Shown: positions 2,403 through 64,000 of the stretch, piece after piece
How the letters are laid out: each line of letters starts with the position of its first letter
Position numbering within the stretch: the stretch's first letter is position 1
Source of the DNA: Octopus sinensis
Lineage: Eukaryota
Direction: 5' to 3'
DNA length: 64,000 bases
NCBI RefSeq assembly: GCF_006345805.1
Contig: NC_043014.1
Coordinates: 4,216,001-4,280,000, forward strand
Made by a program: the position numbers and the translations under genes
The notes under the pieces: generated by a model
What the model was told of the DNA's origin: nothing
Database searches by the model: none
What the model saw: only the letters and a program-made list of their open reading frames with translations

Positions 2403-2899
2403 GTGTGGCTGGTGGACAATGGTTCGACCACTCAGGTGGCGGAAGTAATCTCTTGTGTTTACCTAACGACCCCATTTGGGCCAATTATACAACAAAACAT
2501 GAAGATGGAGGTTGGATTTATGGCACTGAATATCAACTGGAATTCTACTCAAATAAACTCTTTTCTTTTGCTAACGCTGAATCAATTCACCAACACAACG
2601 TTCCGTGTGCTGTCTGTTTGACACGACAACCTGCTGTTGTTATGATGTTACCAGCCAGGACAAAGTGTTACCCTGGTTGGACGATTGAGTATTCAGGATA
2701 TTTGATGTCCAGTAATCATAAAGAAAAAGGCCGGCTAGAAATGAGTGTGTGGATCATGCACCAGAGGCGGATCCAGCAGGTGCGAAAAAACGAAAATGGA
2801 GCCGTATTATATTTTGTACAGGCTTCTTGTGGTTCATTGCCATGTCCACCGTATGTCCAAGGTCAAGAATTAACCTGCGTTGTGTGCAGTAAATATTGA
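2403..2899 (+). CDS. Copy A, isolated exon 4 of the same family (C4-like domain) with no exons 1-3 upstream
   Basis: Acceptor ccaattgtag|GTGTGGCT, and ORF 2360..2899 homologous to the other exon 4s. It carries a compensating -1/+1 frameshift at 2741-2790. Positions 1-850 match post-exon-4 spacer rather than introns 1-2. Confidence 0.78.
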
Positions 2900-3147
2900 A
2901 TAGAAATTAAATTCGGTTCCATATGAAAATATGTCTGTGAATTACAAGAAATTATATGAATTTTTAACTAATATTTTCTTTCAAGTATGTCTATCGTTAA
3001 AAGAAACTGGTATATCAGAAGATATTTGAAAACCATACAAAAGAGGCGACGTAGAAAGCCAGAACTATCCTGAGAAAAAAATCTAAATCTGTCGGAACAA
3101 TTCTAGAAAACATTTTGTAAGATTTCAATTTATCAAATTAATGTTAA

Positions 3148-61700: not shown

Positions 61701-64000
61701 TTCTTCAATTCTATATTTCTCTCTTCTCCATCAATTCCTTCCCATCGAACAATCTACATTGTAAATGATTCCCCAATTCTTTCTTTTAAACTACATTATT
61801 TCATTTTAATTTCGCAGAACCCGGTCTCGGATCATTGTATACCCGGTGGGGCAGAACAACTTGTCCTCCTTATTCAACACTTGTATATGACGGTTAGTAT
61901 ACTTTATATTTTTGACCTCTCATTCTCTTTTTGTCTTTCTCTTGCTCTCTTTTTATACCTCTCATTTTCTCTTTTTGTTACCTCTCTTTCTCTCTCATCC
62001 TCTCTCTCACGCACACGCACACATACTCACCCTTTGTCGGGTTGTCTAACATAAACATTCTCAAATCCTCTTATGATATGTCACGTTTCAAACGTCTATA
62101 CCTGTAGACTATACAAAAACTACACGAGAAAGCTTACTCCTTTGTAGGTATTTGGTCAAATCAGAATATTATATGTTGTCTACTACGGACCAAGTGAAAA
62201 GGATGTTGTCTAACCCCAGAATATAGATATCACTACGATAAATTACAGACAGGGGCTGGACTGAAAACCACCTAGTCGATCAAGAATTTCAAGCTGACCA
62301 GCTTTGGATTGTAGATATCAAATACCGAGGCTGCTAACTGGTGATCAATTGTACTGGCTACGGATGGTAGTATTGTACGTGAGTGACCAGGGCTGAATAG
62401 TGGCCACTTGACTATCATTAACTAGAGTGCCCAGTGATCGTAGGTGTGGGCTAAATTGAATAGAGACTATTAGAATTGATGACAGTGACTGTAAATTATT
62501 AATGAAATGAATGTACAATGTAGAATGAGGACTGGACAAGCCACATACTGTAACTGATGGAAGAGCTAAGTAAAATAGAGAGAGACTAAATATTAGTGAG
62601 AGAACACAACAGAGTACAGAATGCACTTCTATTCTTCTCCGCCTCACCGAAATCGTCCTATCGCTAAAACCTTGCTCTTTTCATGCACCACATCACCTCA
62701 TTAATTATCCAGTATATCTTTGTAAGGTAATTACGACTCTTCCAATTCAAAACTCCTGCTTCCAAAAGCTTCCCCAATCAACCTCACATTCCTTTAAAAT
62801 GCTCTAAGTCTACTCTTTACAAATCCTACACGTATCCTTTATCGGTCGCCCACTTCGACGTCCATTTATATTAAGCACTACGCCATCACTGAACCTCACA
62901 ATTTTTCCTCCCACCTCGTTTCTCTGTATTGCATGAAAAAAAGTCTGTGTGATCATAACGTCTATGTAAGCCTGATTCGTCCGAGTCTAAACGAGAGGTT
63001 TAGCCACCGACTCTCGTATGATCGACTAAACAACATTTCATCGACGGTTACCCACCACTTATCTGCATCTCGTCGTCTCCCGTATTGTCCTACTCAAACC
63101 TCCTACAATTTCCACCATCCAAAATATCCCCGTTCACACGTGAACATCTTTTCCATTTCGGATAAACACGAGTGCATGCGTTATAAAATATCTTTCTTTT
63201 TCTCCATCTATTGACATCCACCGAAAAACACCTACCCAATGCAAACATACATAATTATCCACGTCGTAACCACAAACACTTACCCGTAAACACAAAACAT
63301 ATATATATATAAATATATATATATATATATATATATATGATGAGAAAGTAAATGTACAACTACGATTCAGCGACACACAGCTTACATATAGACACTAACA
63401 CATACACCACAATTCCTTCACACGCGACTAAACATGACTTCTTTTAAGGGTCAAACTGCAATGAATGTTTCCGTTATTTCATATATAATTTTGCTTAATA
63501 TCTTTTTTACGTAATATATTCTTACCAATTCTAGGTGTTGGTGGTGGACAACATTATTCCCATACTGGTGGCGGAAGTAATCTCTTGTGTCTACCCAAAG
63601 ATCCCATTTGGGCCAATTATACTGCAAATGTTGAAGATGGAGGTTGGATTTATGGCAGTGAATATCAACTACAGTTATACCCAACTAATAAAATCTTTTC
63701 TTTTGCTAACGCTGAATCAATTCATGATCACAACGTTCCGTGCGCTGTCTGTTTGACACGACAACCTGCTGTTGTTATGATGTTACCAGCCAGGACAAAG
63801 TGTTACCCTGGTTGGACGATTGAGTATTCAGGATATTTGATGGCTGAGCATCATACGAATAAGGGCAGACTTGAATATGTGTGTGTGGACTATGCACCAG
63901 AAGCTGATCCAGCGGGTTACAGAGACGAAAATGGAGCTGTATTATATTTCGTTCAGGCTGCTTGTGGTTCATTGCCATGTCCACTGTATGTCAATGGTCG
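52780..64000 (+). CDS. Copy E, intact gene running off the window; join(52780..52923,59014..59065,61818..61892,63535..>64000)
   Basis: Exon 1 is identical to copy D exon 1 and the splice sites are canonical. Exon 4 reads open from [15 protein letters not shown] to [12 protein letters not shown] at the window end. It is absent from the ORF track because its stop lies outside the window. Confidence 0.87.
54568..54691. repeat. Hairpin: 56-bp arms, 12-nt loop (MITE-like)
   Basis: 54568-54623 versus 54636-54691, with 3 mismatches. Confidence 0.85.
54778..55685. mobile_element. ~900-bp element bounded by 47-bp direct repeats, unique to copy E intron 1
   Basis: ttgagttatacgttcttgtccatgttgtatttttctacataccttaa occurs at 54778-54824 and 55639-55685, with an internal CT-rich tract. 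Confidence 0.65.
57944..58030 (+). ncRNA. Degenerate paralog of the 27703 hammerhead
   Basis: CTGACGA, GAAA and GTC are kept, but stems I, II and III all carry mismatches (ttttgca, ctttgcatag, cacag). Confidence 0.55.

Follow-up and report, generated by a model that had tools for sequence, protein, structure and literature searches.

A collagen-less family of short-chain collagen C4-like genes in Octopus sinensis varies in short loops of a conserved cysteine-rich domain

Gene copies at the locus

We analysed a 64,000-nucleotide stretch of Octopus sinensis DNA (the window, positions 1-64000) that carries copies of one gene type, whose four exons encode a short-chain collagen C4-like protein of ~255 amino acids. 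The window is AT-rich animal DNA (GC ~0.37) with a single run of 100 N at 21469-21568. Using an Octopus vulgaris homologue as tblastn query, together with inspection of splice sites, we located five copies, A to E, all on the plus strand (Table 1). Only copy D is a complete and intact gene, with an open reading frame (ORF) of 255 codons spread over four exons that are separated by GT-AG introns in phases 0, 1 and 1.

An earlier note on this DNA had described five copies with a constant base and hypervariable loops in exon 4, and our analysis bears this out. Exons 1 to 3 are almost invariant: D and E differ at 3 of 271 nucleotides, exon 1 being identical between them (144/144 nucleotides), and exon 2 is the same in B, C and E, whereas D departs from it by a single C>G change (L>V). 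Within exon 4, a 22-residue framework segment is identical in A, C, D and E, as had been reported.

Copy C has no exon 1 that we could find in the window, where homology with D upstream of the copy resumes only at 24484 (equivalent to 37490 in D). A segment of ~2.2 kb that would hold the promoter and exon 1 is replaced by microsatellite arrays (22400-24500). As exon 1 is also absent from the fetched part of the closest available reference, O. sinensis CM016876.1 (positions 96003-102421 of locus L006; the L loci are stretches that we fetched around annotated homologues), the 5' truncation of C is probably real. We considered that exon 1 might be hidden in the run of N and rejected this, both because the fetched reference part lacks it too and because the contig to the right of the run begins 3' of the exon 4 of another copy.

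Table 1. Coordinates of gene copies, loops and other features in the window
Feature	Position	Strand	Remarks
Copy A exon 4 with stop	2403..2899	+	exons 1-3 upstream of the window
Copy A frameshifts	1-nt deletion near 2740, 1-nt insertion near 2785		reading frame lost over ~14 codons
Copy B exon 1 (start codon, N-region, hydrophobic anchor)	7196..7347	+	4-nt insertion near 7238
Copy B exon 2 (stalk)	11565..11616	+	shared unchanged with C and E
Copy B exon 3 (start of NC1-like domain)	14489..14562	+	1-nt deletion near 14535
Copy B exon 4	16197..16691	+	7-8 small indels, depending on the alignment
Copy C exon 2	28839..28890	+	
Copy C exon 3	31664..31738	+	
Copy C exon 4 with stop	33467..33966	+	intact
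Copy D exon 1, coding part (N-region, hydrophobic segment, start of stalk)	36011..36154	+	
Copy D exon 2 (charged stalk)	40353..40404	+	differs from B, C and E by one substitution
Copy D exon 3 (Pro-rich linker plus the NC1-like domain's first strands and first Cys)	43094..43168	+	
Copy D exon 4 with stop	47907..48403	+	
Copy D hypervariable loop 1	47924..47938	+	QHTQT, exon-4 amino acids 6-10, directly after a long beta-strand
Copy D variable segment 2a	47996..48019	+	TEVEEGGY, exon-4 amino acids 30-37
Copy D hypervariable loop 2b	48038..48058	+	EISHYSN, exon-4 amino acids 44-50; length differs between copies
Copy D hypervariable loop 3	48212..48241	+	exon-4 amino acids 102-111, directly after the GYLM strand
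Copy E exon 1	52780..52923	+	same as exon 1 of D
Copy E exon 2	59014..59065	+	
Copy E exon 3	61818..61892	+	
Copy E exon 4	63535..64000	+	last ~11 codons removed by the window end
Microsatellite arrays	4700-5500, 18453-21450, 22821-24486, 35088-35600, 50180-51890		
AT-rich block (GC 0.22)	44403-46639		in intron 3 of D
Intron-2 ORFs	29128-29631, 40610-41023	-	137-167 amino acids

Family membership and protein architecture

A protein search with exon 4 returned 891 homologues. The best matches, at 90% identity, are O. sinensis proteins that bear the name 'short-chain collagen C4-like'; further members come from Argonauta, bivalves, annelids, nemerteans, amphioxus and corals, and Pfam Collagen repeats are present in a few of these. 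Amphioxus and coral members that carry this repeat (PF01391) are 45-53% identical over 99% of exon 4 (E 1e-44 to 1e-46); among the octopus homologues, PF01391 gave no match. The family is related to the spongin short-chain collagens (SSCC) and is represented here by a collagen-less derivative. As none of the window's six reading frames contains a Gly-X-Y run of at least five triplets, as the ORF of D closes without one and as PF01391 is not matched, the octopus proteins are not short-chain collagens in the strict sense, and the description of the window locus as collagen-less, which the earlier note had given, stands.

The SSCC-related family (Aouacheria et al., 2006) has been discussed among the variants of collagen IV, as a truncated one (Fidler et al., 2017; PMC5395295), in which the spongin-type NC1 domain is marked by ten conserved cysteines and by the lack of the HSQ motifs of collagen IV. 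Copy D has ten cysteines in this region (positions 81, 109, 159, 162, 179, 206, 233, 238, 249 and 252), and reading its sequence directly we found no HSQ motif. Nine of the ten are invariant across 55-56 aligned homologues; the remaining one, Cys81 in exon 3, is not among the invariant positions and lies where several aligned rows have no cover.

The earlier note had also placed the domain near the C4 or NC1 domain of collagen IV, and here the outcome is mixed. We used an AlphaFold2 model of a full-length O. vulgaris paralogue (P0009) whose exons 1 and 2 are identical in protein sequence to those of D and E (predicted local distance difference test score, pLDDT, 83; predicted template modelling score, pTM, 0.72). 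When this model was compared with the PDB by Foldseek, the top 39 matches were all collagen IV NC1 domains, with probability 1.00 and E values down to 5.5e-6. By hhalign against human alpha1/alpha2(IV) NC1, the family segment PCAVC...CYxGW...GYLM pairs with RCAVCEAP...CPSGWSSLWIGYSF (probability 50%, E 1.7e-4, 42 columns); the NC1 sequence used is identical to the NC1 domains of PDB 6MPX and matches 1LI1 chain A over its full length (E 1e-159). Several results speak against a close kinship. The TM-scores of the Foldseek matches are only 0.32-0.41, and a model of exon 4 alone from copy D (pLDDT 84) found no PDB match. Pfam gave no match to the exon-4 protein at E<=1, including C4 (PF01413), and a hidden Markov model (HMM) profile of the family found no collagen IV chain at E<=10 among PDB sequences. 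Sponge spongins are likewise missed by PF01413 (PMC12749355). The relationship to NC1 is thus remote: it is supported by the literature and partly reproduced here, and it is weak by every automatic measure.

Upstream of the cysteine-rich domain, D has a 14-amino-acid N-region followed by its only strongly hydrophobic stretch, of 19 residues (amino acids 15-33), with a Kyte-Doolittle value of 2.67, the next best segment reaching 1.32. In the AlphaFold2 model of the O. vulgaris paralogue, residues 16-56 form a continuous helix, and a beta-rich domain starts at residue 72. The same N-terminal layout recurs in Argonauta and in two more distant homologues (P0030 and P0035). The C-terminal domain of D holds a single conserved NYT sequon, which together with the cysteine-rich character of the domain implies that it would be lumenal or extracellular. 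By these sequence and model features, the hydrophobic segment is likely to be an uncleaved signal anchor, giving the protein a type II topology.

Among the homologues were many unnamed metagenome sequences (P0047, P0085, P0087, P0091 and P0113) of 158-200 amino acids, with large cluster sizes, which are single-exon ORFs of coral-type SSCC genes. We rejected a bacterial origin for them, as these exon ORFs are coral-like and a collagen exon lies just upstream of them; one example lies at 5494-6546 of an ENA metagenome contig (L009), where a collagen-repeat ORF directly precedes it.

Loop variability, segmental exchange and selection

For a wider sample, we combined exon 4 of the window copies with exon 4 from eight loci fetched around annotated homologues, which gave 23 intact distinct sequences. 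In these, two framework stretches of 20 and 23 residues are almost invariant, and the sites at which the proportion of non-synonymous differences (pN) exceeds the global proportion of synonymous differences (pS) are exon-4 residues 5-9, 30-37, 44-50, 53-54, 63-65, 104-109 and 113, with a few isolated ones. Loop 1 comes after VYDGVVGGQ and loop 3 after EYSGYLM, long strands that hold equivalent places in the two half-domains, as judged from the sequence pattern and the predicted secondary structure, which suggests that the two loops may form a paired surface. The loop strings that the earlier note had listed after GGQ, EY and GYLM read as given, including the 6 of 15 nucleotides at which C and D differ in loop 1. 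The one to be withdrawn is 'HTG.YDTN' in copy B, a frameshift artefact that arises when an inserted base is included in the reading; in the intact orthologue the string is QLQDYDTN.

Divergence among C, D and E is not uniform along the unit. Introns 1 to 3 are 92-93% identical, versus 88.5-90% in exon 4, and divergence climbs stepwise from the introns (nucleotide divergence, K, 0.07-0.086) through the last 230 bp of intron 3 (K 0.13-0.16) to exon 4, where the framework has a synonymous divergence (dS) of 0.15-0.20 and the loops a non-synonymous divergence (dN) of 0.27-0.42. Within exon 4, the pairwise homoplasy index (PHI) indicates significant recombination (0.567 versus 0.644 +/- 0.012, p<0.001), and individual motifs occur in different combinations: SSLHAEKGRL is paired with WYDDT or with HFTHT, and HYSHT is found beside three different third loops. 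The 5' part of the unit is younger or homogenised, and segments have been exchanged between copies.

To avoid circularity, we took the three loops of the earlier note, which had been defined on copies A to E, and tested them on the 18 other sequences. In these paralogues, loop pN is 0.347 versus a framework pS of 0.176 (ratio 1.97, 95% confidence interval (CI) 1.39-2.70) and is ~4x the K of the introns, and the three loops are more variable than all of 5000 random sets of blocks of equal sizes. The ratio of non-synonymous to synonymous change (omega) in the framework is ~0.25-0.31 across the 23 copies. Comparison of 12 close pairs gave 26 synonymous and 82 non-synonymous single-hit codons in the loops, with 47 multi-hit codons, and 81, 71 and 22, respectively, in the framework. 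The framework is under purifying selection, and the loops evolve at or above the neutral rate. Diversifying selection on the loops is, from these sequence comparisons, no more than plausible.

Interpretation

How might these features fit together? We lean, with modest confidence, towards a reading in which the genes encode a membrane-anchored and probably oligomeric NC1-type head whose variable loops set the specificity of binding or assembly. The protein consists of a 14-amino-acid N-terminal tail, a 19-residue hydrophobic segment that most likely serves as signal anchor, a short charged stalk predicted to be helical, a Pro-rich linker and a ~185-amino-acid domain with ten cysteines; this head is an SSCC-type domain, a remote relative of collagen IV NC1, and the collagen triple helix has been lost. 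The array may grow through tandem duplication. Recent duplication or gene conversion would keep the 5' two-thirds of the unit (exons 1 to 3 with their introns) nearly uniform, with purifying selection acting on the exons of this part, and exon 4 with its immediate flanks would be older. Four or five short exon-4 loops that flank beta-strands hold nearly all amino-acid differences of this exon and are reshuffled among the copies through segmental exchange. At the cell surface, the heads are predicted to oligomerise in the manner of NC1-type modules, and the variable loops would be the surface that decides the binding partner, whether other chains of the family or external ligands. The sequences establish how the genes are built, to which family they belong, that the loops are hypervariable, that the copies are mosaics and that the assembly has introduced artefacts; topology, oligomerisation and any function in recognition are inferred.

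A number of observations count against this picture. The loops have a raised pS as well (0.491, 2.8x that of the framework), which brings their local dN/dS to 0.71 (95% CI 0.51-0.94), and parsimony counts on a neighbour-joining tree similarly give an omega of 0.70-0.82 for the loops and 0.31 for the framework. Relaxed constraint, together with old segments that were not homogenised, could produce the loop pattern without selection for diversity. The kinship with NC1 is weak, topology was assessed by hydropathy and helix prediction only, copy D is the sole complete copy in the window, and the only protein-level trace is one peptide of another paralogue, found in the ink of O. vulgaris (PMC10142993). 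The earlier note had held that a loop dN/dS of at most 1, with variability matching intron divergence, would speak against its reading; the ratio does lie below 1, and the variability, instead of matching the divergence of the introns, far exceeds it.

The raised pS itself could stem from variants that are old and were maintained, from exchange of segments, from an artefact of counting or from a locally higher mutation rate. It fits variants that were maintained for long and exchanged between copies, and it fits equally well old unconstrained segments that escaped homogenisation. For single-hit codons in the close pairs, the synonymous excess in the loops is ~1.6x.

One alternative is that the variation is neutral. 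Here the loops would be unconstrained parts of a fast-duplicating structural or secreted matrix family with no recognition function; gene conversion would homogenise the framework and the 5' part, the loops would retain old differences, and the hydrophobic segment may be a long signal peptide. Besides the local dN/dS and the loop pS, this is favoured by the significant recombination, by the finding that the same loops are variable 'x' columns throughout the animal family, by the secreted ink that yielded the paralogue peptide and by the classical role of SSCC proteins as matrix or skeletal components (PMC5395295). It sits poorly with a loop pN that is about twice the framework pS and four times the intron K, and with the clustering of multi-nucleotide codon changes in the loops (47/155 versus 22/174 in the framework). 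Furthermore, the 19-residue hydrophobic segment that follows the 14-amino-acid N-region is kept in distant homologues and looks more like an anchor than like a signal peptide, and the collagen part, from which the matrix role of spongin derives, is absent. We consider a neutral origin the main rival to the preferred reading and, on the whole, less likely than not.

A second alternative draws on an analogy to collagen IV's NC1 domain, a recognition module that directs assembly by selecting partners (PMC5395295). The loops might set which paralogues form trimers or pair head-to-head, and on a membrane anchor this would make a combinatorial homophilic or heterophilic code between cells, in place of recognition of foreign ligands. 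In keeping with such a code, the fold matches are of NC1 type and include hexamer-forming collagen IV NC1 structures, many paralogues whose anchor and stalk are constant and whose head varies are clustered together, and spongin-like genes of Nematostella are expressed mostly in neuroglandular cells (PMC12549020). Against it, the TM-scores to NC1 are low, and we judge it quite improbable.

A more far-reaching scenario can also be drawn. Octopods would have turned the ancient module for NC1 assembly into many oligomeric surface receptors, all membrane-anchored, whose loop cassettes are reshuffled among dozens of tandem copies, serving either as a variable recognition repertoire encoded in the germline (immune or chemotactile) or as a head-to-head homophilic code of cell identity like that of clustered protocadherins. 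We regard this extended scenario as unlikely. An immune, allorecognition or chemosensory role, which the earlier note had proposed for the family, is purely conjectural, and the interest rating of that note overstates what the sequence supports.

The closest comparison is with the SSCC-related proteins themselves. The octopus proteins share with them a C-terminal cysteine-rich domain of NC1 type of ~185 amino acids, with ten conserved cysteines and no HSQ, are 45-53% identical to the collagen-bearing amphioxus and coral members, and are, like spongins, missed by PF01413. Unlike them, they have no Gly-X-Y domain, they begin with a long hydrophobic anchor and a charged stalk in place of a signal peptide and triple helix, and their genes form a very large tandem array in which variation is focused on the loops and segments are exchanged between copies. 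With collagen IV NC1 (PDB 1LI1, 1M3D, 1T60, 5NAX, 8TYS) they share the pseudo-repeat of two halves and the motifs C-x-x-C ... C-x-G-W ... G-Y, and all of the top 39 Foldseek matches are to such domains. They differ from it in those low TM-scores and the lack of a Pfam or HMM match, in size (~185 versus 225 amino acids), in cysteine number (10 versus 12) and in having no 7S or collagenous parts; the domain-swap hairpin of collagen IV NC1 is reported to be absent in spongins (PMC5395295). Ctenophores have stand-alone genes for NC1 without a collagenous part (Fidler et al., 2017; PMC5395295). In that respect they resemble the octopus genes, but their NC1 is of collagen IV type rather than spongin type, and neither an anchor nor a tandem hypervariable array has been described for them.

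Two further comparisons are of layout and of mode of variation. TNF ligands, ectodysplasin and the membrane collagens XIII, XVII, XXIII and XXV have a short cytosolic tail, a signal anchor, a stalk and an oligomerising beta-rich C-terminal head. The octopus proteins would share this order of tail, anchor, stalk and head by analogy, if they do oligomerise, whereas their fold is unrelated and they contain no collagen segment. Snail FREPs, amphioxus VCBPs and the sea-urchin 185/333 genes form clustered families in which a conserved scaffold carries short variable segments that are exchanged in mosaic fashion, and for these an immune role and diversification have been shown experimentally. The octopus cluster likewise has a conserved scaffold, variation in short segments and mosaic exchange; it differs in the type of domain and in being known here from sequence alone.

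The family, its remote link to collagen IV and the automatic names of the octopus genes are already known. Our literature search found no paper on the collagen-less, anchor-bearing cephalopod form, on its tandem array or on the mosaic variation of its loops. Most invertebrate phyla have SSCC-related proteins, and what these do outside sponges is an open question (Aouacheria et al., 2006; PMC5395295). The octopus array presents an NC1-type head freed from collagen, on an apparent membrane anchor, in dozens of copies that vary almost only in their loops. If the loops are selected surfaces for binding or assembly, the family would be a new class of variable surface molecules in cephalopods and would make it tractable to ask what is recognised by the NC1 module.

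Contig junction, frameshifts and array size

A last alternative, that the array is decaying, with A, B and C real pseudogenes and the variability partly due to relaxed selection on dying copies, is scarcely credible: the indels of A (two) and B (nine or ten), the lack of exon 1 in C, common to window and reference, and an in-frame stop in one O. sinensis copy would suit it, and it is contradicted by the intact orthologues relative to which all frameshifts of A and B are indels, by an indel profile of the left contig that is a signature of error and not of divergence, by the conserved framework of B without a nonsense codon once its frame is restored, and by the low framework omega over the 23 copies.

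The indels concern the part of the window to the left of the run of N, and coding frameshifts are confined to it. Compared with the reference, this left contig has 123 substitutions, 178 one-base indels and 57 longer indels, versus 52 substitutions and 4 one-base indels in the right contig. In one segment (2001-4000) there are 15 one-base indels and no substitution, and 51 of 90 indels in unique sequence of the left contig lie near homopolymers. The orthologue of A in the O. sinensis reference (L002, 20242-20733) has an intact ORF and no substitution in exon 4; in the window, the two indels of A take away one conserved cysteine. The orthologue of B (L002, 34025-34519) is intact as well. Because all frameshifts in both copies are indels relative to intact orthologues and because the left contig is so rich in indels, we read them as, most probably, errors of consensus or assembly and not as signs of pseudogenisation. 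The view of B, and in part of A, as pseudogenes was rejected on the same orthologous region and indel-to-substitution profiles.

The run of N deserves separate attention. No reading frame crosses 21469-21568 and no exon abuts it. Its left flank is a (GT)n microsatellite; its right flank is unique sequence of a kind found elsewhere 0.6-1.5 kb 3' of an exon 4, and the right contig begins ~0.7 kb 3' of the orthologue of another copy's exon 4 (P0006 type), which lies outside the window. Positions 1-21468 are collinear, at 98.1%, with 17836-39331 of L002 (CM016876.1 ~4.017 to 3.995 Mb, reverse), and this collinearity stops precisely at 21468. Positions 22824-27294 match 97993-102421 of L006 (CM016876.1 ~5.340-5.344 Mb, forward) at 97.7%. 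The gap is a true discontinuity that joins two contigs not collinear in the closest reference. As its two sides are 1.3 Mb apart there and in opposite orientation, A-B and C-D-E cannot be assumed to be neighbours or to form one tandem run; thus, of the tandem cluster that the earlier note had described, the five plus-strand copies stand and their contiguity does not. Either the scaffold was mis-joined here, or the assemblies differ by a real inversion or rearrangement.

The window is part of a very large octopod-specific tandem array. The fetched loci hold one exon 4 per 12-17 kb and are spread, in both orientations, over 3.97-6.55 Mb of O. sinensis CM016876.1; those of O. vulgaris lie at 11.08-11.70 Mb of OX597833.1. 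When copy C was used as query, no protein among the 120 listed matched the orthologues of A or B at more than 88%. Some true pseudogenes exist in the array, because the exon-4 copy at 1251-1745 of L008 (O. sinensis) carries an in-frame stop. This copy also has several framework changes (LYLPYDRI*).

NCBI gene models at three of the loci (L002, L006 and L007) span 40-86 kb over several units and skip intact copies. Some annotated proteins (P0001, P0002 and P0006) have alternative N-termini, and we did not accept these as long-range splicing of variable exons, since they map to repeated sequence of intron 2 or the 3' flank, often with stops. The family is under-annotated, mis-modelled and easily corrupted by assembly errors, so that copy counts and 'pseudogene' calls in octopus need care.

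Other features of the window

Long microsatellite arrays of (TGTA)n, (GT)n and (AT)n occupy the intergenic spacers and parts of intron 1 in every unit, and many spurious long ORFs in the window arise from them. Neither C nor E has the AT-rich block that lies in intron 3 of D. Intron 2 contains a conserved ORF on the minus strand, listed for two units in Table 1 and with similar sequence in others. These intronic ORFs have no Pfam match, and the intron-2 ORF includes the string LLFVDDMLL, which resembles a reverse-transcriptase motif; it probably represents an old retroelement, now decayed, from before the duplications.

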